DNA of 63,551 nt, counting the filler, from Pelomyxa schiedti (taxonomy: Eukaryota > Protista > Evosea): NCBI GenBank assembly GCA_020536535.1. It is 9 parts of 9 records of this genome, joined end to end, with 100 filler letters (N's around TTAATTAATTAA, not from the genome) between each part and the next. Parts side by side here need not be neighbours in the genome. Positions count along the whole stretch, not along the records: positions 1 to 19,861 come from JAHLWZ010001099.1; 8 more parts are not named here. One strand, written 5' to 3'. The translations under genes and the position numbers were made by a program. Of the stretch, positions 1-19,447 are shown one piece after another. How positions within the stretch are numbered: position 1 is the first letter of the stretch; each line of letters starts with the position of its first letter. The notes under the pieces were generated by a model that searched no databases, was not told the origin of the DNA, and was given only the letters and a program-made list of their open reading frames with translations.

Positions 1-212
1 ATCATTACTCGGACCAAATCTTGAAGCACCCTGCCACCTACACTTTGTTCTCTGAGAGGTTGGACTCGCAGCCGCAGATGAAAGCGCTCAAGGCTCAGGG
101 CGTCATCCACGACAGAGTTTATGTGCCTTGGACGTACGAGGCCGATGCCCTGGCCGCAAAACTGGCTCTGGAGGCTGCCAAGAACGCCGCTGCCGCGAAT
201 CGAACAACTTGA
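1..212 (+). CDS. 3' end of an unidentified gene (partial)
   Basis: GC-rich, coding-like frame open from the window edge to TGA at 212, followed by an AT-rich UTR-like stretch; no recognisable motif. Confidence 0.45.
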   Translation, partial: HYSDQILKHPATYTLFSERLDSQPQMKALKAQGVIHDRVYVPWTYEADALAAKLALEAAKNAAAANRTT

Positions 213-286
213 GAAAAAATACAGTAAAACACCAATGAAAATGCTTTTTCAATGTATGGTTTACAGAAGAGTTGGAAGTGTTGTGG

Positions 287-1720
287 TCAATGCATTATTT
301 GTGATTGTTGGTGGGTGTTGTTGCATAGATCCATAAAATCTAACTTGTGTGTGTGACCCCTCAAATTTTTTTGTTGTTGAAGAACAGCTTCATCAACAGC
401 ATAAGGCACATTGATGGCTGTGTATACAAGAAGCTCGGCTGAAATTGTGTTGTTCATCATGTAAGACTTTAGAGAAGAGGCCGAAGCATCGTAGGCCAGC
501 TTCCATCTATTATACTGATCTTCACCACATTTCTGGAAATGACCCCAGAACTTGCCATTGTCTGAATGTGCTGCTTTGGTGTACGGCATCCATGTGTGTG
601 TAAAGTGAACAATTTTGACCTGAAGACTGAAATTAGGATATTACAAATAGGTTTTTTATGTTTTTAAATCTTTTTTCTATGTCAATAGCTCTAACAGTTC
701 TGTTTTATGAAGAAACATACATCCTCAGGTTGGTATGGCCATTTCGGCAAGTTCTTCCAGCAACCACATTGATACACAAAGCCAACCTCAGAGGTTGGCA
801 GTAATTCATAACTCATGTTATTGGAAGTGATATACACGGAAATTAACTCTTGGTCCCCTTTCACTATAACGTGGTTCTCCAGAGTTTCCATCATTCCCGA
901 GTACCAGTCTTCATTTGGAATTGTTGACATGACTCCACTGTTGATCCATGCTTTGTTTTGACGACAGGTAATAACGTCTGCTTGACTGACAAACCTGAAA
1001 TTTCTGTTAAACAAGGTATCTTTTGATTTCGTACGGTTCATCAACATCAAATAAAGAATCAATGTTATGCTGAATGCTGAGGTCGGCATCAAGGTAAACT
1101 ATCCTGTCAAATCTGGACCCAAGTCTCCAAATCTCTATTTTGCAGACTGTTGTGTTCCACCACTCGTATTTTGGTTTCCAATTGCGGTGCCATTTCAGAC
1201 ACTCTATATCTTGGGTGGAATGAGCTGAGATTGTTGTTGTTTCATATTTTATTTTTCATCTTTGGAAGGTTGCTCACACCAATGACTGTGATGTTTGAAA
1301 TCGCCATCAAAGCCCGAAATTGTGGTCCAATGTTCGGAGTGCACAAAACAACTCTCTGCCTCTTTGTCCCAGAAGCAACAAGCCCCTGCAAGTGCGAAGG
1401 GTCCGGAGCGCCCGGAAGTAAGGAAGAGGATTGGAATTGTGGTGGTTGCATACCTGGTTCACGGTCAGGATGCCAATCAACGGGCTTTCGTTCGTTGCCA
1501 CGAAGACGAAAGCCTGTCTATCGAATGGCCCGGGTTCAGGTGAATATTGGGGAGTCACGTCCTCATTGACACACAATGGTTCTTTTGGTGGTGGTTCCAC
1601 CTCATCGCAGCCACTATCGAAAAAGAAAAAGGCCAAGAGCGCCACCCAGCACGCAGCCACCAGACATAACACAACGAACAAGGCTGTGTGGGGCCGTGCG
1701 ACGCGCCTTAGAACCCGCAT
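287..1720 (-). CDS. GT8 (glycogenin-like) type II membrane glycosyltransferase, multi-exon
   Basis: N-terminal TM (ALFVVLCLVAACWVALLAFFFF), Pro-rich stem, AFVFVATN, KIEIWRLG..FDRIVYLDAD (DxD), INSGVM, GDQELI and KIVHFTH, the typical GT8 motif order; paralog at 6839-8121. Confidence 0.85.
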
Positions 1721-2149
1721 TTGGCTGGGGGATTGTAGATCAATGACTCTTTCAACGAACATCACACCCTGTGGGTTCTGAATCCTTGGCAAATCCACTG
1801 TGCATGTGTTGTTTCAGTCATACAACCACAACGGTTGAGAATTAATCTTCCTTCTCTCCGTCTCCACCAGCTGCAACACACCAAGTTGAGCGTTGGAAGT
1901 TTCCAAAACCACAGAAGGGGAGTATGTGATGATTGTCGTGGCTTGTGTGTAGTATCTCGGTGTTTCTCGGACTCTGGAATCAAGAAGGAAAAAAATTTCG
2001 GATGTTAGAAGCGCAGGGTAATAAAAATTTGTTCTAAGCAATGAAGGATATGAGACTTGAATTGGAAATCACTGAACACAACCCACATGCTGGCGTTTCC
2101 AGCGTGTGGAGAATAAAAAAAAAAAATTCCTCCATGAATTATGAAATGC

Positions 2150-3145
2150 CTACTTGGCGAAATAAAAGGAAACGAACTTGTTGCTCTCATCCCAGCCAAT
2201 ACAGAGCTGGCGGCAAACAGACATTGTGAAATTGTTTACTGCAGACTTCACTGCCCGTAAAGTTTCAACAGAACCATCAGGCTGTACTCTCCACTCTGGC
2301 ATCTCATCCTGTGCAGGTTTTGGCATACAAATAATAATGGTTAAAGGTTACAATGTCAATGTAGTCGTGCCCTGCCATTATTCCACCCCTTTTAAGTTTG
2401 GGGTACCACAAATTCAAATCCTGGAGAACACTTGTGTAGTCATGTCTGGCATCAATGTACACAAAAGTAAGGGACTCATCTGGTATCATTTTGGCTGCCT
2501 GTAAAGCAAGGAAAGGTCAAACTCAGTTAGTACAGAAATCCATAAAACCTGCTCTGATGTCAGCCTCATTACAGTGGCATACTGGAATGGTGCAAGTTCA
2601 GCAACAGACTTTTGATAAAGCCCATTTTGTGCAGCCTAAAAAACATCAACACTTAACATTCAACACGGAATTACCTGATTGACATTGGCTCCATCATCGT
2701 AAGTCTCCTGCCACATCCAAGGGTCAACTGCATAATACTTTGTGCACTTCTTCCAGCCAGTAAGAACTCTCTTTGAGAAATACCCGTTTTGCACTCCAAT
2801 TTCTGCTCCCTCTCCTGATGAAATTGAGACCACTAGGTTGGTGGAGAATAAGAAACCTTCCAATCCCAGCCACTCCAGCAACACGGGAAAAAGGACCCGG
2901 GAGTTCACACAAGGTAACGGCTCTTGTGGTGGGAAGTTGGCGCAGTTCGGATTGTATGCTAAAGAAACGGGAATTTCAGGGGCCTCATCGACTTGCGGCG
3001 GGACACGCGCTACAGCTGGTCCGAGGTGGTCGTTGGGCTTGTCGGCACGTGGGCTCCCTGACCGTGAGAAACCAAAGAGATAAATGCAAAAGATAATCAA
3101 TGCCGTCAGCGCACAAACGACCACCTCCTTGCGGCGCATCGCCAT
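2150..3145 (-). CDS. Type II membrane class I SAM-dependent methyltransferase (Methyltransf_24-like), multi-exon
   Basis: N-terminal TM, then GAEIGVQNG (motif I), YAVDPW, FVYIDARHDY, WYPKLKRGGIMAGHDY; ends FYFAK* like the paralog at 15045. Confidence 0.85.
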
Positions 3146-4745
3146 CCCGAAAAATGATCCTTCTTTGCTTGATTAGTTTAAAAAATACATCAAACCATCG
3201 AACGCGGAAAACCAACACTCTCATCTTTCTCAGTGTCACTGCTCACACTCCCATCTATATCACTGCTGACAGTCTCAGTATCCTTGTTCAGACTCTTGAT
3301 CTCAGTGGTTTTTTGGTACAGCTGATGACTTTCTTGAATGTGACTCTGATAGAACTGTTGCCAATCTGGTCCAGTTTGGGTGCGTGATTTAGGTCTGCTG
3401 GATGTGGGTTCTTAAACAGCCTACAATTGGCTCCATTAACACACTTGGGGCTCAAACTAACTCCACCCAAAAAACACAAGAAACTTCAAAATCTCCTCAC
3501 CAGGGTCTCAGAATCAGGTGGAGATGGTAGTCCTCAGTTGGTCAACACAGTCCTCAGTGTTTCCCTCTGTTCCCATTGCTGCATTGGGAACCACCTTACT
3601 AATTACCTATTGACTTTGTGTTTTTTCTTCCCCAAATTGGAGCCCACAAGCAGGACATCTCCAATCTGGCACAAGGAAGCAGCAAGGTGGTGCCCAAAGT
3701 GACAGTGTACCCCATTTGACTTCAGGTGTGAAACAAGTAATTTGCTTGCTCCTGTCAAGTAGTTGATGGGCCTCTGTAGATATCAATAAACAGTGGCTGT
3801 GGAAACACCGTCTTCTGTGCAATCACTATGGGGTCTTCCTTGCTGTGTGCCCACTCACATAGCGTACAGCACTGCTCCACATCTTCCCTTGGCATCCATC
3901 TCACGTTTTTTTGTTTCCTATGGCACCCAATTCAACTACAAATACGCACGCCAAGACGCCGCGGCGGCGCCGCGCCAACCGCCCCGCAGTAAGAGTATCG
4001 TTGGCTTGGAAGATTTGAAGCAAGTGTTGAGACAGAGTGAGAAGTTTATATTATTCAAAACAAACTGGTATCCAATGGTATTGCAAATACAGACTGAAAA
4101 GGAATGGAGTTTTTTTTGGTAAAAATTCTCTCCACCAAGACTCTGAGCATTCAGGAACAGAAGTGGGTATCAAATCAGGGTTGTGTGTAATAATAATCTC
4201 TTTTGCCTGATATAAGATTAACAACACTTATTCCCTCTTTCCTCAAATTACCTTTGCTCTAATTTCCAATTGCGTTGGATGCTCATTGTGGGTTATCTTC
4301 TCAGGGATACAATCAAGTAACTTTTGTTTTTGACAAGGAAGCAACAATGATGGTCTCCCAACCCTCCTCAGAGGTCTATCTCTTTCTGAGCATAATATGC
4401 CCTGCAAACCACCTCACCAACACCACAAGCATGACCAGTTTGGGCAAAAGAAACTTGTGCAAACTACAAAATGGTGAAAAATGGGGCTGTTGTTGTGTAA
4501 ATCATGAACATTATGCAAAGCAACAGCACGACCAATAACAGTGTCTTCTAACAGAAAATGCGGGGGCACAACCGAGCTCCGGACTGCGCATCACTCTCCT
4601 TAAGCATCGATGTTTTGTTTTGATTAAGGCGTTTTAACAGAAAAATGATGGATCTGTGGATACAACTTGGGTTTTCGTTTCCGCCTTGGATTGAAATAAA
4701 GCTTGATGTAGATCAAAAAATCCGATTTGGATAAATTTATATTTG

Positions 4746-5717
4746 CTATTGAGGGCATACCACACCCTTGCCATTTTTCTTATGGACCACGGAGTAATTG
4801 CTGTATGGAGTGGTTCTCCCCTTGAACTTAAATGAGAACAAAGGGTGACAGCCATCTCCATCCCACATTCTCTCTTGCATAGTTGAGTTTGCCATCCAAA
4901 ACTCGTGGATGGCCTTGTTGTGTGCAATCATGTCACACACCACCCCTGTGGAGTTTCCAGTGTGTTCTGCCATTCTCATCAGATTTGGTGCCACAATTTT
5001 CATATGCGCTATCATTGCTTCCCGCTTTCCACCAAACACTCCACAGTTGTACAGAAGCTTCTTTTCGTCAGTTCTGTCGATCACGTCGCAGCCCTTCCAC
5101 GACCTATGCACCCACACCCACTGCGGTTCCTCCTCCGTCGAGAAGAATATGTCCCGGCCAGTGATGTTCCGCATAATCACGACAGGGTTGCTGTTGAACC
5201 TCACATCCAGAACGTCAGTGGCCATCACGTACTCCCACTCGCTGTGGTTCTGCATCAAATCCAACAGAGCCAGCATCCTCCACTCGTTTGGCCGCATGTT
5301 CCTGTTGTAGTGTGACTTTTCCACTCGCACAAACTTGAAAGTGTCAGTTTCCAACTCCCTCACTGCAGTCTCGTTCAGCCCATTGTGCATCAGAACACCG
5401 TGGATTCCGTGCTTGTGCAGAGAGTCATACCACCCTCGGAAGTACTCCACGCAAGTGGGAGTGTACTTGTTGCTCTTTCTCTGTGGATCAACCTCCCCGT
5501 GGAAGTAGGCTCCAACCACAACAAGGGGGATCGTCGGTATTGGTTCTGCCACAAGGATGGGTGGTGATGATATCGGTGCTGTAGCGCCACCACTGTGGTA
5601 ATTGACATCTTTCGGGACTACAACTGTGATTGGCCGCCCCATAGAGGCATACAGGAGCACACTGGTACACGCCACCGAGACCACCACGACGAAAAGCAAC
5701 ACAATTGGGCGGCGCAT
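4746..5717 (-). CDS. Intronless type II membrane GT-A-like putative glycosyltransferase (323 aa)
   Basis: Single ORF with N-terminal TM (IVLLFVVVVSVACTSVLLY), Pro-rich stem, YVMATDVLDV acidic motif, LYNCGVFGG, CDMIAHN and C-terminal VVHK. Confidence 0.7.
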   Translation of the reverse strand: MRRPIVLLFVVVVSVACTSVLLYASMGRPITVVVPKDVNYHSGGATAPISSPPILVAEPIPTIPLVVVGAYFHGEVDPQRKSNKYTPTCVEYFRGWYDSLHKHGIHGVLMHNGLNETAVRELETDTFKFVRVEKSHYNRNMRPNEWRMLALLDLMQNHSEWEYVMATDVLDVRFNSNPVVIMRNITGRDIFFSTEEEPQWVWVHRSWKGCDVIDRTDEKKLLYNCGVFGGKREAMIAHMKIVAPNLMRMAEHTGNSTGVVCDMIAHNKAIHEFWMANSTMQERMWDGDGCHPLFSFKFKGRTTPYSNYSVVHKKNGKGVVCPQ

Positions 5718-5781
5718 TCTGTGCGTTGATGTTAGGGACTCAAGAGAGTTTCTTTCCTTTATTGTGGAATGAACGTTCTGT

Positions 5782-5856
5782 GTTTGAATAAAATAATCAA
5801 CAGACCGGAACGATCGTCGCTCAGTCTCGGAGGTCTGTGTTTTTTTTTATTCAGCC
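5782..5856. mobile_element. Short MITE-like element (copy lacking the nested insert seen at 45459-45710)
   Basis: tgaataaaat-aa-tcaacagaccggaacg...ttttattcagcc aligns with the 45459 element once its internal insert is removed. Confidence 0.65.
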
Positions 5857-6198
5857 ATCTGAGAGTCTAGCATGGCAGCTATTATCCCAGCGTTGTCAGG
5901 GGAAGTGGCACAGATTCCCACTGGGGATATACAATCAGTACAAGAGGATTAGCTGCCAACACCTGTGAATGATTTCGCCCTCATTGAGACCTTTAAAAGG
6001 CTGCTGCCCCTTGATTGGGTCAATGAAATTGAGCATTGCTGTGCTGCCACACTTGACAGCCTATCGTTATCAAAATATGCAGAGATAGCCAACAAGTGGT
6101 ATGTGCAGGATCCAGATAAGTTATAAGGCCACCTTCCAGCCCACCTCAACGACTACAAGTTGTACGCGGTGACTCCACCGGCACAAGCACAAGTGGTT

Positions 6199-6234
6199 CA
6201 GGATCGGCGGTCTGGTGTTTTTTTTTATTCAGCC
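6199..6234. mobile_element. Right end of the same MITE family
   Basis: caggatcggcggtctggtg-polyT-attcagcc is essentially identical to 45676-45710. Confidence 0.65.
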
Positions 6235-6838
6235 ACGCAGAGATTCTAAAAAGAATAATAGCAATTCTTACCTTCCAATTGGAACGAGAGGGTTAAAAAA
6301 CTTAACTAGAAAGTTTTAAAGGCATATACATTGCTGTACCTTCGTATACATATTCATCTTCATACATCGATGGCGGAAATATATGTACTTGTGTAACTTA
6401 ATAAAAAAAAAAAAACTCACGATGACGTGTTAAAACTCACGAACGTCATCATCTCTATGTCGGGTGCTGTTTCCGATGGGGCTGAAATCACCCCGATGCT
6501 TTGAGGAAGTACCTGTCGTACACCCGAATGAGCAGGACCTTTTCCGAAGGACAACGCTTTGTGAGCGCCGATCGCTCTGTCACCAGACGTTTTTGACGCC
6601 GTTGTCCGACCCGTTCGCACGGAACGGGCATTACACGCCAACGATCAAAGTTTTTTTTTTGAGTTTCGTGGAAGTCCGCTCCCTCGCAGACAGTGCAAAC
6701 CCCTGGGTTACCCACTCAATCCGACCAGAGTGTTCGATAGACAATAGTATCATTAGCGGGCACCAGGGTTTCAGCTCAGAGGGATACGTATTTCCAGAAC
6801 CCACAAATTGCAAAAAATCCTCTTTTTGGACCAACAGC

Positions 6839-8121
6839 ATGCCAGGCACCGGGGTGAAGACACGTGCTCTGTTTGTCGTTATCGTGTGCAGTAGTGCGTG
6901 TTCAGTGATTTGGTTGCTGTACCACGGCCCAGGCTGGGTGACTGCGCCTGCTGTGCCGACAGCCCTGCCGACTACACTGGCCGTGGCAGTGGCACCACCA
7001 CCTCCAATTATTGGGGTGGGGAAACACCCTAGGGAGGCGTTCGTATTTGTTTTGACGAACGATAGTCCCTTGGTTGGGATACTCACTGTCAACCAGGTTG
7101 AGTAATTTTACTTGTTAAGACTTGTTTAATATTCTGTCAGGGATTGGTAAATACCAAAACTGAGAGGCAACGGGTGGCACTGTGTACCCCTGGTGTTACA
7201 GATGCATGCAAAAAGGTTTTGCAAATGGCAAATATATCAATTATAGGTTTTTCTTCAAAAAAATTTAAAAACCTTTTGTACACATTGTTAAAAATAACAA
7301 AGACCTTGAGTGGCCCAACACAAACCACTCCAATTGGAAGCCAAGATTCCCACAATGGGATACTACTTTGACAAAAGTGGAGCTGTGGAGACTGGGGGAT
7401 AAATTTGACAGAATTATTTACCTTGATGCTGACCTTCACATTGCTCACAACATTGATGAGATGTTTGATATGAAAGAACCGTTGATCGTTCTCTCCCTTA
7501 TTGTTCCTGACTTGAGTGCAGGATTGTTGCATCAGCGTACTTTATTAAATGCAACGATAATGCCAAGGGCCTCTTAAGTGGAGTGATGTCAACAGTCCCA
7601 AATGAGACATGGTATCAAGGAATGATGGAGGTCCTGGACACAACAATCATTACAGATGGTGATCAACAGATGATAGAACATTTCTTGGCCAGACACAAAA
7701 TTCGCCCTGTCTTGCCATCGCACTCTTATATTGGAAAAGCATGTCACTGTGCCTGCTGGAAAAACAAGCCTTACCCTTACAATCTCAGTGATGTGTGTAC
7801 TGTAAAGATTTTTGTTTTATTGTTAAACCCCGATAGGTGAAGGTTGTTCATTTCACACATCAATTCATGTTGGACTACAGAGCAGCTGCAGAGGCCAAGG
7901 ATGGACAGTTGTGGGGTTGGTGCACTTGTGCTCCCATGCACTACCGTGCATGGAAGAACACATTCCTTTCTGTCACTGAATCACTCAGAAGTTATTTGAT
8001 GCAGTACCCTGTTTCAGGCAACCTCCTGGTATACATAGCTGCACATGTGCCTGCTGTGGTGGATGAAGAAATATTACAGCAGCAAAGACACTTGAGAAAT
8101 GACTTGAATTGGTTTTTGTGA
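6839..8121 (+). CDS. GT8 (glycogenin-like) type II membrane glycosyltransferase, paralog 2, multi-exon
   Basis: TM ALFVVIVCSSACSVIWLLY; AFVFVLTNDSPLVGILTVNQ; KVELWRLGDKFDRIIYLDADL; GDQQMI; KVVHFTH; collinear with 287-1720. Confidence 0.85.
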
Positions 8122-8759
8122 CAAGATACTTCACCCAAGAAAATACTTGATGGAAGCAACAAAAAATGCCCCTAAGTCGGCATCACACTGTTAATCTCAA
8201 CCAAAATCAATAGCTTTCATCATGCAGTTCGCTTCGGCACTATCGGTTGCACCTGGTCACATATCCAATGGGGAGCGCACTTCTAGACCCCCACTTCGAA
8301 GTTTTAGAATGGAAATGAAGTTTTGTTGTTTAGCGCTAGGTTAGATGATAGATTATAGCGATCAGATTTGCTCGAAAAAAGCTCCCACAACGAAACAGCA
8401 TTTATTACTTTTTACTGAGAGGTACCAGTGCTCCCCCAGCTAAACCTAGCTTATCCAGCTAAGTTAAGAGTTTCTTTCTGTTTTATTTTATTCGTGTTGT
8501 AAGTTTAAGGCCAGGGATATTAAATACAATATTTGGAGTATTAAATATTTGAGAATGAAATCATTTAGAGCAGCGATGCTTAATCCGAGCAGGGGGAAAA
8601 AGTCGAAGGTACCATATCTGGGTTTCCTGCCCACGGTTCTGTTTTGGACACGGTGTCTTACATGTTCCGTCACAGAAACCTTGTTTTTAGGCAGCGCAAA
8701 TCTGCCTGTGTCACAGATCGGCCTACACCAAGTTAGTGGTGGGGCAGTTGGAGCCCAGA

Positions 8760-11700
8760 CTGTAAATAAAAGCTGTTGCAGGGTCATTGTCCACCTATTC
8801 ATTTGAGTTTTAGTTAATTAGGCTGGTATAATTATTCAGCTCTACCCAACAGCGGTTCCAATAAGGAGACCAAAAAATGAGGAGGAAAAGACTACAATAA
8901 ATGCCTCGTAGATGTATACTCTACTCCTGCAGTGGGGAAAAAAAATTATGGCTTTTACTCAAAGTAAGGAACATACAGCCAGGACTTGGAGAGTCCAACC
9001 GCTCTCAATACACCAATTTCCTTTGTCTGTTTGCAAACATACTCGAAATTAGTGAAAAGAATGAGGTAGTCATGGCAATTGCTGTCATGAATAACTTGTG
9101 GTGGTAAGTGCTTCACATTTTCGATTTTTTTTGTACAGCAGCTACAACAAAAGATTCCATCTCATCTCTGAAATCCCATATACGTTGAGACTGCGGCGCT
9201 CCACAATCCATCCTGTTAGTGAACTTGGCTGGATAGGAAGTTACAATTATGTCATCAAACTGTGAGTAAGGTGTATCAGGCTTCACTTTGATTAAAAATT
9301 CTCGTAGTGGCAGTTGCTTCTTAGATTGGATGCCACCATTGGACATCCTGAGATACGAAGGAAACGAAACAAATGTGTCCTATAGTGATAGGTCGGCTAT
9401 GGACTGGAGTGTGTGGATGTGGATGCTTACTTGGTCGGTTGTTGAGGGAAATTTGGAAAAAACAAATGAGGGTGCACTATCCAAAAATGGCGCGACCTTG
9501 GTTATGAGGGGGGCACTGAGAGTGTGTAAGTGACTTGGGTTTTTTTTTATGGAGCACCGAGAGTACTTATCACTAAAGGTCATTAAAACGTGGTCTCCAG
9601 GTTTTACCCCAAGATACTTCTTGTATGTGGAACCAAGCACTGTCGAGCGGCTACCATCCTTCCACTATGTAAGCAGTAGTTGTCTCAAGTGTAAACACAC
9701 CAAGGTATAAACCCTTTTGGCATTGCTTGGAACTGAGGGATCGTACAATTGCTCTGAAACCTTCGAAAAAGAACTTAGCAAATAGGGCCCAGTTATGTGT
9801 TTCCGAACCTTTAGGAAGCCGGGAAGAGAAACATTGAAAAAATTCGGTGACAACCCATTTCTGGTATTAGACGCACTATAAATATGCCCTAGAGGGGGGG
9901 GGTTATGTGTTCTGCCAAGCCGGTAGTTGTTTGTGTACCCAAGTTGCTGACTCCCATGCCCATCCCGGTTATCTCCGCCAGGTTTCTAGTTTTCCAGGTA
10001 TACCCTTGGATTCTGGGATCTGTAGCTGTCGCTCCTTCTAAGGATTGCGCCAGCTATAAATTTTTTTTCAGCAGAAGCAAAAGAGTGGTGTTGGTTTGGT
10101 ACCGGTAATAAATTGGGGCTCCCCCTTGCGTAAACCACAACAGGAGCACCGGCATCTTGCAGAAGGGAGTACTGGAAAGAGGAAACCTATTTTCAAATTT
10201 TAGTGGATGAGCAGTGGTTAGTGGATGAGCAGTATGAGAAAGGAAAATGCTATGAACAATTGCTGTGTGGTCCCAGAAAAAGAAGAGCCAACAAAATATT
10301 TTCTCAAGCAAAGTCTCTGAGATAGGAATTACAGAATTACAGTGGCAAAAGTTATGAGCCTTACCGAGACTCAATGACAATAGTACAAGACCAAGAAGCA
10401 TGGACATAATTAATAAAAAGAACATATTTAGCATCACTTGGAAGTTATTGGCCAGAAGGCTTGACGGAAGCACATAGTAGATTCCAAACCTTTGAGTGTT
10501 GAGACATAGATTTGGCAAAAAAAAAAAAAAGGTCAGGAGGGCACACCCAAAAACAGTAAGTACCATTCCTACGAGAATAAGGGTCCAATTGATTTTCCCA
10601 GGTTCTGCACGCTCCATGGTGATTTGAACAGCCTGTTTTAGTTACACCCAAATCGAAGGGAAGTTCCCACACACTTGAGTCTTGGAGCGTCTTGTATCAA
10701 GTGACTCCTGAAGCTCTTGTGTTAATGCAGTTCTGTGGGAATAAAAGAGTTGAAAGTATGAAGAATAAATTAGCTACCTTAGAGGAAGAATGGATGATAA
10801 AATAGGAATGAGAAAGCCGAGCAGAGTTGCTATCCCAACAGCATTTGGAGATAGTAGTTTACTCAATGGAACCTTAATGGCATGGTTAGAAAGAATTAAC
10901 TCATTTATTTTCTGATTACTGCTGTGAGTGCTTCAAATGCCTTGGCAATGAAAACTTCAACTAGTTGTGCAAAGCACATTCCGAGAATCCATGAGGGTAA
11001 AGCATAGGCCATAGCCTAAGGTTCGTCTATCTTAATACTACACAATAGAGAGGTTACCTGAGTGATCATCAGCCCAATAACACCAAGTTTGGAAGTACCA
11101 AGAGTGCACATGACACCCATCTCAAATGTACATGTCTCAACATTGATCATTAAGAGAGAGTAAATAAGAATTACTGACAGAAATAACTGATTGAGGTTAG
11201 AGTGAAACATTAATATCCAACTGAACAGTACAAGAATGACAATAGATATATTGATGAGGAGCCCAAGAAACAATGTGACAAAACTGAAGTTAATAATGCT
11301 ATCCAAAACTGGGAGCGACACATCAATATTATTGAATCCTGCTCTGTAAGCTACCATATGGTAAACTCCTAAAAGAGAGGGGAAAAAAGTACCTCTGACG
11401 CAAATCTAATAACCTGAGATTGAACAATGTCAACATTGGAGCTCATATAAGCAGAAACACGGGGAGGAGGCAGATTAACAACCATACTCCTTGCGTGTTG
11501 GTAGATCAACCTTTTTTTCAATTTACAATCAAAAACCCATTCACTGAGAAACCTCAAACCTGTGTGATGTCGTTTCGTAACTCTTCATCCCATGGATCCA
11601 TTTGCTGCCCAGGTATGAGATAAAATCTTTAGTTGCAGTTTAGGTCAATTGCATGGCAATAGGTGGTAATGTAATACATTCATATTCCACGATCAAAGCA

Positions 11701-12420
11701 ATATCTGACTGGGCAGCATGTTTACCCTGAACACAGTTAAACTAGGAATCAATCAAGTGAGGATACACCTTGGGTTTAAGCCCCACCCCCTCTATCAAAA
11801 AAGAAATACTGGAGGCATGTATCTGGGTCTTCACAATAGCCAATAGAAAGGTCTGTTTCAACACCTTTGATAATCCATCAGTACACCTAAAACTACAGTC
11901 TGAATAAGAACCATGGTACTTCCAATATGGGTCTGCAAGATCGAGCCCAGGAGGGCATGAGTTGGAATGGACAATGCGCCCAGATAACTCCCATCTGCAA
12001 AGGGAGTAAATTGATTGAAGACTCAGTAGGCTTGCCTTGGGGTAGTGTAATTGAACCCTTCGTCAGTAGCAAGAACAGAACGTGCCATTGAAAAATTGAG
12101 AAGAGTATAACCAGTGTCATTGTTTATCCTGATTGTAGCTGTCAGGAAGCAAAGGCTTGAAACAGGCATACAAACAACATCCTTTTCACCATCGTGTAAT
12201 TCAGACAAACGAAGGTATATAACAGGGGCATTTGTTACTACTGACAATAGTATTGCCACCACTGTAACCACAACAAAGCAAGCCAAAAATCCAATTGTGT
12301 AGTTGGCCTTGGTGGCAGTTATTTGTGAATTTTTTCTTGAAGCAGGATTGTATGCAAAACACGAAACGACAACAAATGGCAATACCAAAAGTAGTAATAG
12401 TATTAACAATAAAAAAAATG
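8760..12420 (-). pseudogene. FtsX-like (MacB/ABC3-type) multi-TM permease, probably decayed
   Basis: NYTIGFLACFVVVTVVAIL..PVIYLRLSE, IYSLLMINVETxTFEMGVM, QTKEIGVLRAVG and RVYIYEAFIVVFSS match the protist FtsX-domain permeases. There is a frameshift near 9030, unrelated sequence at about 9870-10250, and a truncated C-terminus. Confidence 0.7.
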
Positions 12421-12679
12421 GCAGCCTCTCAACAACAAAATGGAGCAGGGAAGTGATGCCAAATGCGTGCCTTGTTAGTTTTTATTTGCACCCAGGTCTG
12501 TTTGCAGAAGTGCAATCACAACAACGCCGTCGACGCCATCCACTTTAGTATTCGGTCGGTCCAAAAAAAACCAACGCTTAAAAGGGGCCCGATTGAATCA
12601 ATTCCACAACACGGTTTCGATTGTAAAATAACCATTTGCGTTCGAATTTCCCCAGTGCATTCCGGTGTAACGCTTCCGT

Positions 12680-13410
12680 ATGTTGCGGTGGCAGAAAGCG
12701 CTCCTCGTAGCGGTAGTGGGGTGCGCGCTGGTCGTGGTGACGTACAAGATGGTGTCGTCGAATGGTCAGGACGACAAGCCTCCTACGGTCCAAATACAAA
12801 AGGTGGAGAAGGAGGCGGAAAAACAACCACCTGCTGAAGTAAAGAAGAAGTGGCCGTTCGCGCACGATGAAAGGTGTGCGGATGTCACCCCGCAGGAGCC
12901 ATTGACCACAATTAAGACCCTCGCTGACCTGCCCGCTCTTCTCTTTACCAGGAAAGTAGTCGGTACGCTTGTTGTTGTGTTTTGGGCTTGCGTGTGGGTT
13001 GGGGAAGGGGTGTGTGGGTTAACAAACAAGTAGGTGAAGCGGTTGAAGTTAAGGCACCAAATGGGGATTTTTCTGCCACTCTCTTCAAGCAGTGGCCCAA
13101 CTGTACCAAATTTTATGCTGTCTCTCCGTCATATCCAATAAGCTTCAATAGCGGTCCAGTTGTGGTGTTTGACAAATCATCAAAGGAGGTTCAAGCCTCA
13201 GCACAGCAATTGTGAACCATTCTAATTCATTTTTCAGGCTGCCGAACAAATTCCTGATAAATCCTTGGCACTTGTATACCTAAATAACTACGCAACGGTA
13301 CTTGAAGATTTGGCAATATGGTACCCAAAACTCAAACTAGGGGGAATTATGTCTGGTGGTTTCAAGGATTTGGTATTTCTCATTCCCACTCTTTACTCTC
13401 GACTTAGTAA
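12680..13410 (+). CDS. Type II membrane methyltransferase paralog with degenerate SAM-binding motifs (pseudo-enzyme or young pseudogene)
   Basis: TM, then PQEPL, W..CTKFYAV, IPDKSL and DLAIWYPKLKLGGIMSG, homologous to the other two MTases with shared intron positions. EIGVxxG is replaced by EVKAPNG, AVDPW by AVSPS, and IDARHDY by LNNY. Confidence 0.7.
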
Positions 13411-15044
13411 TGAGTGCAATCTCTTTGATGCACTTAAAAAATAACAGAAGAACGGCGATAACGCCGCGCTCTTTGAGGAGTCACTCAATACACCCGTCCT
13501 TCAATTTTCAAGAGCTGTCTGTAGGCAAGTGTCATTGACCTACCGCACAGGGAAATCGCCCTCATTTTACTTTGCAAAGTAAAACAAGTAAAACAGTTTT
13601 TGTTTTTTGAAACGGATATTCTCTCATAAACAGTTCCCTCTAGGCTAAACAAATTATTTGGGACTCCAAAAACCAACAATCTGGTCCTGGGGTGTGGCGA
13701 GGTGACTTCGCGTCGCTGTAGTTCTAATCACTGATGGATGTCTGTTGGGACCCTGAGGGAGATTCAGGCGACACCTAGATCTGATTCTAGCGCCTTATAA
13801 GCGGGAACACCATCGTAGTTATCCAAGCTAAGCTAAAGTAATAAACAATAAACTCTTGTGCAGTAAGGGAGAAAGAAGCCCAAACACAAGTAAAACAACA
13901 ACCATCAACACCCCAGCACACCTCACAGTGTGGTGGTCAATATCCAAAACCAATCGCCACAAGGGGAAAAAAAATACTTCTGAACCCTTATAGGTGTTGT
14001 GGGCGCACCCACTGTGACTCTAGACTGAGGACCCAGCCTGAAGTGTCAGAGAGCAAGTTCCGAGAAGCAGTGAGACTCATAACTGGTCCAGGTCAGGCAT
14101 TCACAGGAACGTTCGGGGCGTCTCAACAGCTGTTCAAAGTTATTATTAATTTCTCGAGGTTAGGTCCACAAGTGACCCCCCAAGGTCCCGACCAATCTAG
14201 TTGCTACTAATAATAATATAGAACAGCATTCCCAAAACACATAGAGAATGGCCATCTCGCGATTCACTGACAATTCACGGGTTGTGGTGGGTACTAGTAA
14301 CATGCCTTTTGTCAGAGAGCAAGTTCCAAGAATCATCGGGAAACTTAGTTCGGGACAGAGCTGGCCATCCACAGGAACGGCCGGAGCGTTCATTCTAATG
14401 GCCTTTCCTTGAATCCCCCGCCGTTGTACCACAGAAAGATTGTAAATAGGAATAATAACAAAAAAAGAATTCTTCCTGATAGACACTATCACACACACAA
14501 CTCAAATGGGAACGAGAGTCTTATCACTTTGCTCTTCGCTGTCTTCCTCCGTCGTAATCACCTCCTCGTCCTCGTCCTCATAATCATCCTCGTCTTCGTC
14601 CACACTGTCGCCCTCGCCCTCTTTCTTGCTCGGCACTTCCTCGTCGTCGTCACTCCTCCTTGGTGGCTGTGGTTGCGTGTGGTTGGTGTGGTGTGTCTAC
14701 CATTTGCTCGTCGTCGGTGGTGCCCCCCTCGTCCTCGTCTTCGTCGTTGCTGGGTGCTCGTCGGTTTTTTTTGTGCGTGGTGCTTCTTCGTCAGATATAG
14801 TTTTTCTATTTGCGCAGCAATTTCGTGATGTAAAGCCAAGTCAGGACTGATAGAACTGGTACTAGTTATTGAAAAAAAATCCTTTCTCCCTTCCAGGCAC
14901 AGGGACTTCTGGACCAAGCATTTTCTGGTCCACCCTGTGGGCCAGCTAAATCCAATCTGCAGATTTTTCCCTCCACCCACTACTGAGAACAACACTCTGA
15001 TTCATTTAGGCTAAGTGCTTGAGACTTTTGATCAATTGACCAGG

Positions 15045-16132
15045 ATGAAGTTCAACAAGGGGGTAGTTGCTGCTGCATCGGTGGTGGCGATTATCGTTGT
15101 GTGCATTTACTTGGCCAGTAATCGTACGCCCGACGCCCCCGTCGATGGAAAAACCCAACAGAACGCTGTGGCCACGAGTGCCCCAACACCAAAGAAAGAA
15201 GTGGCAACCATCCAGGAGGTGTCACTGGCGTACAGCCAGTACTGTGCAAATTTCGCACCACAGGAGCCGTTGCCGTGTGTGAATCAGAGGAACAACATCC
15301 CTCTGCTGTTGGACCGGCTGAATATAACAGGTTCGATGATCTGTGACCTCCTTTTTTTTTTCCCCGTTCGAAGTATTTCCTGCATTATCTCATTCCATTC
15401 CACAAAGGGGAAGGAGCAGAAATAGGAGTGCAAAGTGGAGCCTTCTCCAAGGTAATTCTTGAGGGATGGAAGAAGTGCACAAAGTTTTATGCAGTTGATC
15501 CCTGGATGTGGCAGGAAACATATGATGACAAAGCCAACGTGGCTCAGGTAATTGTGCATTTTTCACTCCCAGAATAAAAGTATTTTTTTTTTTCACACAG
15601 ACTGCCCAAGATGCACTTTACCAAAAGACAGTTGGCGATCTTAGACCATTCAAGCATGCAACTGTACTGAGGTTGACTTCAGAGCAGGTTCACCAAATGC
15701 CCCCAACTCAATGTAATAAACGCCTTAACATACCTGAATCAGGCAGCCAAATTGATACCAGATGATTCCCTTTCTTTTGTATACATTGATGCCAGACATG
15801 ATTACTCAAGTGTCCTTCAAGACTTGTCACTGTGGTATCCCAAACTCAAGAGGGGAGGAGTACTCGCTGGCCATGACTTCATTGACATTGTATGTCTATC
15901 TACTCTTTAACATTTTTTCTTGTTTTAGTGTTTATGGAATGTGTTGTTTTTATTCTGCACCTCAATGCCAAAAAAGGATGAGATGCCAGAATGGAGAGTG
16001 CAACCAGATGGCTCTGTTGAAACTCTGCGGGCAGTCAAATCTGCAGTACTGAATTTTACCACTCGTATTTGTAGGCAACTCTGTGTGTGCTGGGATGAAT
16101 ACAAGTGGTGCTCCTTTTATTTTGCCAAGTAG
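15045..16132 (+). CDS. Type II membrane class I SAM-dependent methyltransferase (Methyltransf_24-like), paralog 2
   Basis: TM VVAAASVVAIIVVCIYLA; GAEIGVQSG, FYAVDPW, FVYIDARHDY, WYPKLKRGGVLAGHDF; ends CSFYFAK*. Confidence 0.85.
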
Positions 16133-18537
16133 AACAAAAAGAACCAACAGTCAATTCCTCTTCCTTTTACCTAGCACAAAATTAGAGGTGGAGCATAGGA
16201 CGATGCAATTATTCAAAACTAATACGGGAGATCTTTCCAATTTCGTTTTTGTGTTAATCCAGTACAACCAACTCGAAAACCAGTTAAACAAACTCTAAAA
16301 GAGTCCTGAAAAAACTTAAACTTGTTTTCCGGGAGCTTTGGGCAAACATTCAGTAGTTTCAAAATCATCATTTTTATAGGAAAACGGGTCGATTTATGTG
16401 CTGCCATGGTGACCCGCTGTTCGTCAAGTTTTGGGAATGAAGTGAAGGGTGACCCAGAAGCACAGCAACGAATAATGACAAAACTTGCATGTTGTGGCTG
16501 TGAATCGAGTGCAAACAACAAAACTATACAGCACAAATTGTGGCAGAAAACGAGTCACCAAAGAAAGTGAAAAGCTACATGTTATAAAGGCACAAACTGT
16601 TGCATCTAACTCATTCAAGTAATTTGTCAGTCTTGCAAAACTGTCAGGAATCTTTTTCAGCACCATACAAGGAAATAATTGGTTATTCAGAACAGTTTGG
16701 TGGGCCTTACACAACAGTGACCGTTAATCTCCCAAACCGTGGGCAGTTCATGAATGTGTTTTATTCACATGTTTCTCAGTTGGTTCGAGAGTGGGTTGCT
16801 GCACAGGAACAGAATCCACAAATGCAAGCACTGCTTCCTCCTCCATCACAATTGTTGCCTCCTTCTTCCCTGGTGTCTTCTCCACAAATTGACACTCCAG
16901 TGGTAACACCAGAACCCCTGGCAAGCCCTTCAAGTCCCAGTGGTTGTCAACTTCAGTCAGTGCAGAATACACCCTCTATCGGCTCCCGTTTCATGTCTTC
17001 CACTTCCCATACAACAAGCTCCTCCCAGCTTGTGCCTCCCAGGTCACAAGCAGAGCAGAATGTGACTCCTCCCACGAGCTGTACAACATCACCTGCCACA
17101 TGAAAACCAAAACTTGTGATGTTTAAAAAAAAAAGACTTTTTTCCCCAAGTTGTTTTAGTGAAGCCAATCTAACCCAACACCATGCAATGAATGGCGTGA
17201 CATCCGTGTTTCCAAGCAGAATATTAGATCGTCAACATCCGCACATCGCCGCACTCCATACTTATCTGTTCTCGGCACCAAGTAAAACCTGTAAGTAATT
17301 CCAAGTGCAACTATGTGATTCGACTTGAAACCACATCCCAGAACTTCTCAATTAAATTAGGTCTGGGGACTGAGGGGGATTACATGCAATAAAGCTTCCA
17401 GCTGCAGCAATCTCTGGTGTTTGTTGTCTGTGCTGGGGCATATTCTAATACCACAACACTGTTAGCGCCTAAGCAAAAGTGAGTAGACACATGGAGGATG
17501 TTGAAGTTACCAGGATGTGGGGACAGATGACAAGGTAACGCATGGGTATAAAACTGGACTTTCTCTTCCTTTCTAGGCTGAAATCTGTTGTCTGGAGGGC
17601 AGAGCAAATTGTTTTTACAGATGAGAAAACATTTGATTCTGGTGATATTACCAAGAGGTTGGAGGAATGAATTATTATTATTTATTTGTTAATTAAAAAA
17701 CAGAATGGGAAATTATGGCTACTCTCCAATAAATGAGTGACTTCCCATAACAGCCCGGCTTGTGCATCTCCCTGTTCCAAAATATGGCCAGGTACTGCCA
17801 ATCATCTAGGTGGTATTGATACCGTTCCACAGCAACTGATAAACCTGGGGTTGCACTTTTAACCTTCTTGGACAACTTAAGCAAGAAAATTCCCTACGAG
17901 GCTGTTAGGGGGTAATAAATGCAAATATTCTACAAAATTACACAAGCAATACTTTGGAGATATCTCTAGGTGTTATAACCTCGTTAAGGTTGTCAGAGGC
18001 CAAGTACGATAACGCCTTTGGTCCCCCTAGAACTTTCCCACAGTAGTGCTGTAGAAAAGTGCACAGCCTAAAGTTCTTTGAACTGCAAGAGGGAAAAAAA
18101 GGCAGTGTTGGGGCAGTTAGAGTGACTTACTTGGGTTTAAAGTGCTGAACAATGTTACATTTCATGGTCAACACAACTCACACATTGGCACAGGCATTCC
18201 TTGAAACGTGTCGTGTGACGAAACAAAATAAAATAAAACACGAAGGCGATGCGCGGCTGTTGTTCGTCGGTGGGGCTCTGGTGCGTGCGGCACTGGGGAG
18301 GGACCTGTCATCGAAAATGAAGTGTGTTGTGACATTCGCAGCCCCCCGTGCAACTTAAGTTAAAGAAGCCAAAGTTTGCTAAAAAAAAGTCTATCCTGGT
18401 TTTGGGTGCTGGACTAACTAAGGACTCACAGGGACACTTTTAGGCCTGTCAATTCTTGTGCGGGTACCAAAAAACAGAGTTTCAGTCAAGATCTTTTTTT
18501 TTTTCTTGTCATGGGGCAAGGTTGTTATTCTGTGTAC

Positions 18538-19447
18538 TTAGAAGTAGGTGTAGTGGGGGTTATCACCCTCGTGAGTGATTCCAGTCACCAAGCCATGTGC
18601 GTTGATGTGAATCTTCCTCAGGGCGCCAGGAATCTTCTCCCAGTTGCCTCCATGGGGCTTCCTGAAGACCTGGGCAGCTCGGTTGCAGCAAACGGCCTCG
18701 TTGGTGCCAGCACTGACATAGATGCAATGGCCATCAATCTTGTGCCAGTCAGTTCCCATTGGGTTCTCAGCGCTGGTTCCTACGAGATATTAGACAGTGT
18801 ACGGGAAAAAGAAGCAAGACGTAATAATGGAGGAAATGAAACGATGAATAGAAAGAAAAGAGATACCCTGGCGGACGAAGATGTTATCGTCGTGATTGCA
18901 ACCCCAGACTTGGAAGTGAGGCCCGCATGAGACCATGTTGAGCTTTCCGGGGACAACAACCCAGTCTGTGGTCTTGGTCTTGAAGTAGATTTCGTGAGCA
19001 GCAGTGCATCCCCATACGGTCCCTGCCTCGCCCTGGGCAATGTGCTCGAAGTGGGGGGCGTTCTGCTTCTCCCAGGTGGTTCCCATAGGCTCAGTTTCGG
19101 TAATACCAGTTCGGATGAAGAACTGGTGGAGGTGGTTGATTCCACACACGTGAGGAATGGGTCCCTGGCTGACACTGACGTGGTTGAGCAGGCCTGGAAC
19201 TACGACCCAGTCGTGGGTGTAGGGCTTGCGGAAGAAGATCTGGTGGCCAGCATTGACTCCCCAGAGGTTGCCCTTGGAGTCAGACTCGATTTGCTGTTTG
19301 TTAAGGAAGTGAGAATATAGTAGTGGGTTGTCACAGTTTGGTAATAAAAAGTGGAGTCTGTTATGTTGTGTTACGTTCTTGTTTGTGTTACGTTACCACA
19401 AGTTGGCCTTCAATGTGTGTCCATTCGACGGTCGCGGTTGCTGCCAT
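18538..19447 (-). CDS. Tectonin-family beta-propeller lectin (3 exons)
   Basis: Repeated W-x-x-(I/V)-(P/D/E)-G-x-L-x-x-(V/I)-S-x and (L/V)WG(V/C)N...IF blades, e.g. WVVVPGLLNHVSVS, WVVVPGKLNMVSCG, VWGCNHDDNIFVR, WEKIPGALRKIHI; about six repeats, no signal peptide. Confidence 0.85.

Follow-up and report, generated by a model that had tools for sequence, protein, structure and literature searches.

The stretch of DNA analysed here (the window; 63,551 nucleotides, filler included) comes from Pelomyxa schiedti, and its first part is the entire contig C1099 (JAHLWZ010001099.1) of a 52.4-Mb assembly of 5337 contigs; the published single-cell genome of this species holds 19,876 genes (PMC8887013). 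C1099 carries genes for two glycosyltransferases (GTs) of family GT8, a third GT with a GT-A fold, three class I methyltransferase-fold proteins (MT1, MT2 and MT3), an FtsX-like permease and a tectonin. The initial annotation recognised these eight genes and read them as a 'writer-reader' cluster, building and O-methylating a surface glycan and encoding a lectin able to read the methyl mark. All eight are present as open, canonically spliced models, except that the frame of the FtsX-like gene appears broken near 9030, and the count of eight proved too low, since the contig also holds the last exon of an O-acyltransferase (1–212) and a small multicopy element (3.3–3.9 kb). The features are as follows.

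1–212, plus strand: last exon of a predicted Acyl_transf_3 plus SGNH O-acyltransferase (OafA/OatA-like layout), the remainder of which lies on contig C1987
287–1720, minus strand: GT8a, predicted type II glycogenin-like GT8, 384 aa, five exons, DxD intact
2150–3139, minus strand: MT1, predicted type II Methyltransf_24 protein, 271 aa, 8 of 8 invariant residues
3300–3900, minus strand: small cysteine-rich multicopy element or gene, high depth, loose ends; related copy on contig C495
4746–5717, minus strand: predicted GT-A-fold glycosyltransferase of an unnamed family, type II, 323 aa, intronless
6839–8121, plus strand: GT8b (annotated as Pelo_16238), predicted type II glycogenin-like GT8, 365 aa
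8560–12480 (ends approximate), minus strand: putative FtsX-like multi-pass permease with two FtsX halves (PF02687 below cut-off, E 0.0012 and 0.013)
12680–13582, plus strand: MT2, predicted type II pseudo-methyltransferase, 235 aa, open frame
15045–16132, plus strand: MT3, predicted type II Methyltransf_24 protein, 271 aa, intact, 77% identical to MT1
16260–18213, no strand assigned: dispersed repeat block, common to contigs C174 and C986
18538–19447, minus strand: six-bladed tectonin, 238 aa, three exons

For spliced genes the searches ran one exon at a time, by reference or via annotated proteins (MT1, GT8b), and joined translations were used for frames, hydropathy, dN/dS (the ratio of nonsynonymous to synonymous substitutions per site) and scoring against a profile built in this analysis. 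Comparison with RNA contigs covered positions 1–6000, and genome-wide family counts are lower bounds. GT8a, MT1, GT8b, MT2, MT3 and the tectonin gave canonical GT-AG models with open frames, as did the GT-A gene, which has no intron. Each of the six enzymes carries an N-terminal hydrophobic 19-mer (Kyte-Doolittle hydropathy 2.3–2.9), with 2–4 basic residues ahead of it and 4–9 prolines in the following 40 residues. In agreement with the initial annotation, all six are therefore predicted from their sequences to be type II membrane proteins, in which a short basic tail precedes a single hydrophobic segment and a stem rich in proline. Four genes (GT8a, MT1, the GT-A gene and the acyltransferase) were present in RNA contigs from one sample, although these contigs carry no expression levels. 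All four introns of GT8a and four introns of MT1 were seen as RNA joints, the GT-A gene was covered at 4745–5325 with zero differences, and RNA contigs of 1.3–1.4 kb extended into 1–219. A 3285-nt contig of run X1, which is probably DNA, covers GT8a and MT1. Bacterial or viral contamination was ruled out by the RNA-confirmed spliceosomal introns and by proteins annotated as P. schiedti.

Both GT8 assignments held: Pfam scores lay close to or above the cut-off, and glycogenin was matched at E about 1e-14. An exon of GT8a scored 25.5 bits against PF01501 (cut-off 24.3), and GT8b scored 23.5 bits, slightly below it, with a glycogenin match at E 4e-14 and top Atlas families that were all GT8. The two proteins are accordingly classed, on sequence, as members of the glycogenin-like clade with a DxD motif. 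They are 50% identical, with dS (synonymous substitutions per site) of about 2.3, so that synonymous sites are near saturation. GT8a and GT8b, like MT1, MT2 and MT3, are old local duplicates that are still interleaved. A single inverted duplication of one GT8-methyltransferase pair was ruled out, as the two arms differ in gene order. Elsewhere in the genome, a long and apparently perfect inverted duplication, possibly an amplification artefact, is centred on a GT8 gene (C801:64501-74500; L017).

The unrelated GT-A-like enzyme of the initial annotation, at 4746–5717, was likewise confirmed in kind. Its structure model (predicted local distance difference test, pLDDT, 91) was nearest to the glycosyltransferase domain of human LH3 (6WFV; Z 15.9, root-mean-square deviation 3.3, 191 residues), followed by Mimivirus R699 (Z 15.1) and then by GT6 and GT8 enzymes, with the PBCV-1 capsid glycosyltransferase 2P6W also among the neighbours. 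Judged by this model, the enzyme belongs to the GT-A superfamily. An acidic metal motif, Asp-x-x-Asp, is invariant in 103 sequences of the family, and a C-terminal His is kept in 91% of them. In profile searches neither the enzyme nor 102 relatives gave a GT Pfam match, GT_PLOD included, so none of the named Pfam GT families fits, and the enzyme had no PDB sequence match. Relatives numbered 415 in eukaryote, virus and bacterial data, and none of the partner families was present at the loci of the nearest ones. In P. schiedti the family occupies about 7 dispersed loci, often near contig ends and repeats, a pattern that suggests recent, mobile spread of this unnamed GT family. About ten intronless copies were seen in this intron-rich genome (including those on C251, C25, C986, C1211, C1626 and C4854), several of them frameshifted. 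On a virus-like metagenome contig (L033), a GT-A relative stands directly after an MGAT4-like gene, near a heliorhodopsin.

Of the three class I methyltransferases initially proposed, the fold family was borne out, whereas the catalytic set is kept in only two. MT1 and MT3 exceeded the PF13578 cut-off, have the class I fold (the MT1 model reached pLDDT 91.6) and contain the motif I Glu/Gly, the motif II Asp, Asp-x-x-His and Gly-His-Asp, keeping all eight residues that are invariant across 74 relatives. MT2 has lost 4 of these 8 residues together with the motif I Gly, and its motif II Asp and Asp/His/Asp set are gone. The loss of invariant S-adenosylmethionine (SAM)-binding and catalytic residues rules out MT2 as a third active methyltransferase. 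A paralogue of MT2 on C495 shows identical losses at 59% identity (dN 0.31, dS 1.9, dN/dS about 0.16). Given that the two copies share their losses and are under purifying selection, they constitute a conserved pseudo-enzyme lineage, and the same dN/dS, with the open frame, rules out MT2 as a decayed pseudogene. Genome-wide, Methyltransf_24 genes were found only at the window locus, on C495 and on C174, where a recent duplicate of the MT2-MT3-repeat block (87–95% identical) is followed by unrelated genes. Tandem duplicates of the MT2-MT3 pair lie amid repeats at C174:1-7840, with at least 2 MT2-type and 3 MT3-type pieces, as paralogue or haplotype, and apparent WD40 and alpha-SNAP genes lie downstream of them.

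The best PDB match of the methyltransferase family profile was MeT1 (E 2.7e-5), a mannoside 1-O-methyltransferase whose gene belongs to a methyltransferase-mannosyltransferase cluster (PMC9883506). By sequence, the PDB entries matched are sugar O-methyltransferases: MeT1 and, weakly, a spinosyn rhamnosyl enzyme. Among 15 long prokaryotic or viral relatives, the methyltransferase is fused to GT34 in four, to GT2 in two, and to GT9, GT29 and a group-1 GT in one each. Relatives also have GTs, sulfotransferases, FkbM methyltransferases and flagellins as neighbours; these fusion and neighbour counts are not independent, because the loci are related to each other. The MT1/MT3 family further includes a eukaryotic, mostly diatom, cluster (template modelling (TM) score 0.84). 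Taken together, the matches point to a sugar-associated methyltransferase clade for MT1 and MT3, from which we infer a sugar hydroxyl as the acceptor.

The acyltransferase exon stands tail to tail with GT8a, and window bases 1–121 are an exact 121-nt overlap with the end of C1987. The Acyl_transf_3 match of the protein is over the cut-off (E 8.6e-12) and its C-terminal SGNH match is weak (E 0.011), with the Ser and Asp-x-x-His motifs visible; the N-terminal Arg-x10-His motif of the AT3-SGNH family reads Asn in P. schiedti. C1987, together with window 1–229, is a collapsed two-copy repeat node with two ways in (C495 and C1979) and two ways out (the window and C139), and the two copies differ by one single-nucleotide polymorphism in the window, both types occurring among the RNA contigs. 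Three genes or gene parts lie at the end of C495: the pseudo-methyltransferase paralogue, a gene of the Nuc_sug_transp family and the probable beginning of the acyltransferase. On C1979 we found retrotransposon debris and a 228-bp tectonin fragment, and no acyltransferase start. The simplest path runs from C495 through C1987 to the window, because all old Methyltransf_24 paralogues then lie at one locus, and this is probably the true path. The O-acyltransferase is thus certainly adjacent to the window genes and the nucleotide-sugar transporter probably so; both were found after the hypothesis of a cluster had been stated. Beyond the C139 exit, the next gene encodes a class I methyltransferase of another kind, which has a hydrophobic N-terminus; its best relative from a plasmid is part of a polysaccharide locus and lies among glycosyltransferases. 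This unrelated methyltransferase (L149:8500-9670, minus strand) starts about 120 bp beyond the other acyltransferase copy; another methyltransferase domain lies at L149:1-582, and an apparent GH7 cellulase at L150:3199-4860. The debris on C1979 (L021:1-1505) is Ty3/gypsy reverse transcriptase-like and stands beside the tectonin fragment, which is 98% identical to the window tectonin.

A genome-wide count of these families had been set as a check against chance co-location, and it showed them to be rare, at 2–7 independent loci each (4 for GT8; all lower bounds), which rules out family abundance as the explanation for the named families. GT8 and GT-A genes would be expected to meet by chance within 20 kb of a methyltransferase locus 3e-5 times, in a test chosen after the fact. 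A broader null was also considered, in which any glycogene counts and such genes make up 1–3% of all genes; in Dictyostelium they approach 2.5% (PMC3188802). Under this null, four families in six genes are expected 0.002–0.15 times per genome, and five families in eight genes 0.0001–0.016 times. At least three unrelated enzyme families stand side by side beyond chance, four being physically adjacent. Co-location therefore exceeds chance for the named families but is only moderately significant under the 'any glycogene' null.

The reading that we favour, and hold to be somewhat more probable than its negation, is that of a Golgi build-and-decorate gene cluster that adds methyl and acetyl groups to one secreted or surface glycoconjugate. 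The transporter of the upstream contig would supply the donor sugar, the two GT8s and the GT-A enzyme would add sugars to the glycan in the Golgi lumen, MT1 and MT3 would use SAM to cap sugar hydroxyls with methyl groups, and the AT3-SGNH protein would O-acetylate the glycan. MT2, itself non-catalytic, would be a partner of MT1/MT3, probably a subunit that serves as scaffold or binds the acceptor. What the analysis shows are the gene models, the type II anatomy, the folds, the rarity of the families and the transcripts of GT8a, MT1, the GT-A gene and the acyltransferase; we infer that the enzymes reside in the Golgi, that they act on sugars and on one common product, what MT2 does, and that the transporter contig is joined to the window. 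Neither the tectonin nor the FtsX-like gene probably has a part in the cluster's work.

Several results weigh against this reading. The window enzymes alone, three families in five genes, are expected 0.1–3 times per genome under the broad null, and it is the acyltransferase and the transporter that make the case for a cluster, because the three window families by themselves are not convincing there. The transporter link is itself unphased, because the acyltransferase is a collapsed two-copy repeat. The other GT8 loci of P. schiedti stand alone, its other GT-A copies have no GT8 or methyltransferase genes nearby, and its other tectonin loci also lack the partner families. Considering that the GT-A family is intronless and dispersed, with other copies lacking partners, the window copy may have been inserted late. 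Sugar methyltransferases do not stand out in the fold search, where TrmR and catechol-type enzymes score level with MeT1 (Z 16.4–17.1). None of 102 viral and bacterial methyltransferase loci had a GT8 or GT-A relative nearby, which also leaves the transfer of a ready-made viral or bacterial GT8/GT-A/methyltransferase block unsupported. A scan of metagenome contigs gave no close relative, so no syntenic locus was seen.

A rival reading is an accidental, repeat-rich neighbourhood, in which two old tandem families, GT8 and Methyltransf_24, came to lie together by chance and were later joined by a mobile copy of the GT-A gene and by the duplicated acyltransferase, each Golgi enzyme having its own product. 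Three families are no extreme outcome under the broad null, GT-A copies are scattered, and recent duplications (the MT2-MT3 block on C174, the acyltransferase on C1987, the tectonin fragment on C1979) attest to local rearrangement. We nevertheless consider such an accident unlikely, given that four unrelated glycan-enzyme families within six genes are physically certain, rising to five in eight if C495 is in phase, and that the other acyltransferase exit also begins with a class I methyltransferase, the plasmid relative of which sits among glycosyltransferases. A different doubt concerns the acceptor, since catechol-type and tRNA methyltransferases are structural neighbours at equal Z and Dictyostelium carries methyl-phosphate on mannose (PMC6994554): the luminal methyltransferases might act on a sugar-phosphate, the carboxyl of a uronic acid or a small phenolic. 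This appears very unlikely indeed, as the PDB sequence matches are sugar O-methyltransferases, the fusion partners are mostly GTs and no phosphotransferase gene was seen in the cluster.

In the full writer-reader proposal, the tectonin would be exported without a signal peptide and bind the O-methyl sugar made by MT1/MT3, serving self, prey or symbiont recognition. Its identity was upheld, with six blades, a Pfam Tectonin match above the cut-off (PF19193, E 1.5e-25) and Lb-Tec2 (5FSB, E 5.5e-19) as the best PDB match; Lb-Tec2 binds 2-O-Me-fucose and 3-O-Me-mannose (PMC4539729). One of only three full tectonins in 52 Mb lies 2.4 kb from MT3, and the chance of a tectonin within 20 kb is 0.2% for that family, in a coincidence picked after the fact. 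Against this, hydropathy revealed neither a signal peptide nor a membrane segment, the 2.4 kb between tectonin and MT3 are repeats, no tectonin comes after the C174 copy of the MT2-MT3-repeat block, and around the two further full tectonins, which have the same layout, the window enzyme families are absent for about 5 kb. Only 4 of 6 blades keep the Asn that is typical of the repeats of Lb-Tec2, and the class also includes GlcNAc-binding and bacteria-binding lectins (PMC11186620). The tectonin is no less likely to bind prey or bacteria than to read a methyl mark. The writer half of the initial proposal has therefore gained (rare families, a sugar-associated methyltransferase clade, an O-acyltransferase, a nucleotide-sugar transporter), whereas position is the sole evidence for the reader half, and is suggestive; the full proposal we regard as quite improbable. 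Its largest extension is a genome island that would cover everything from transport and glycan building to O-methylation and O-acetylation, along with a pseudo-enzyme partner and a methyl-reading lectin, and would serve to tell the cell's own surface or endosymbiont vacuoles from prey; this is improbable to a high degree and, if true, the recent rearrangements around the acyltransferase would generate alternative glycan types.

The remaining features of the contig lie outside this argument. For the FtsX-like permease of the initial annotation, both FtsX Pfam matches fall below the cut-off, and an apparent frameshift near 9030 (9020–9045, in the second FtsX half) is rescued by no usable intron. 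Either the gene is a pseudogene or the assembly is wrong at this point, as it may be. The 3300–3900 element had no Pfam match and, as far as tested, no glycan connection; related copies are transcribed. A low-depth RNA contig spans a short open reading frame at 4251–4388, and a 167-aa Pro/Ser-rich reading frame lies inside the repeat block at 16600–17103, neither with a Pfam match.

By analogy, the cluster would work like the mycobacterial methylmannose polysaccharide (MMP) cluster and the giant-virus glycogene clusters, recast as spliced Golgi-type genes, and would be a member of neither. The MMP cluster (meT1, mmpH, pmeT3, manT; PMC9883506) likewise groups a glycosyltransferase with two sugar O-methyltransferases, but these are cytosolic bacterial enzymes with another GT class and a hydrolase, whereas P. 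schiedti has spliced type II genes, an acyltransferase and a pseudo-enzyme. In giant viruses (PBCV-1 A064R/A061L and the 12-gene cluster of Mimivirus; PMC9614988), GTs occur linked with, or fused to, SAM methyltransferases whose targets for O-methylation are terminal sugars. Unlike those of P. schiedti, the giant-virus enzymes are soluble, intronless and act outside the Golgi. The galactosaminogalactan cluster of Aspergillus is also eukaryotic, and its unrelated genes serve the synthesis and modification of a single surface polysaccharide, but it relies on a plasma-membrane synthase, an epimerase, a deacetylase and hydrolases and is not known to involve Golgi type II enzymes or methylation. 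In plant xylan, GUX (GT8), GXM (DUF579) and TBL provide a Golgi GT8, an O-methyltransferase and an O-acetyltransferase acting on one glycan, yet the genes are unlinked and the methyl- and acetyltransferases come from other families. To our knowledge, clustering of unrelated Golgi enzymes is unusual in eukaryotes. The window tectonin resembles Lb-Tec2 and fish-egg lectin (tectonin, PropLec6B) in its six-blade repeats and similar length, although two blades diverge and the likeness is one of sequence, sugar specificity aside.

Few of the luminal enzymes responsible for O-methylation of eukaryotic glycans have been identified, as stated for C. elegans in 2019 (PMC6422873), and our literature search found no paper linking PF13578 to Golgi glycans and none treating Pelomyxa glycans. 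MT1 and MT3 are concrete, intact candidates, of predicted type II topology, for luminal glycan O-methylation, and their gene neighbourhood suggests which glycosyltransferases make their acceptor. The same neighbourhood gives a starting point for working out the function of an unnamed GT-A family, which has over 400 clusters. The conserved pseudo-methyltransferase MT2, standing beside active-type paralogues, is a candidate regulatory or scaffold subunit.

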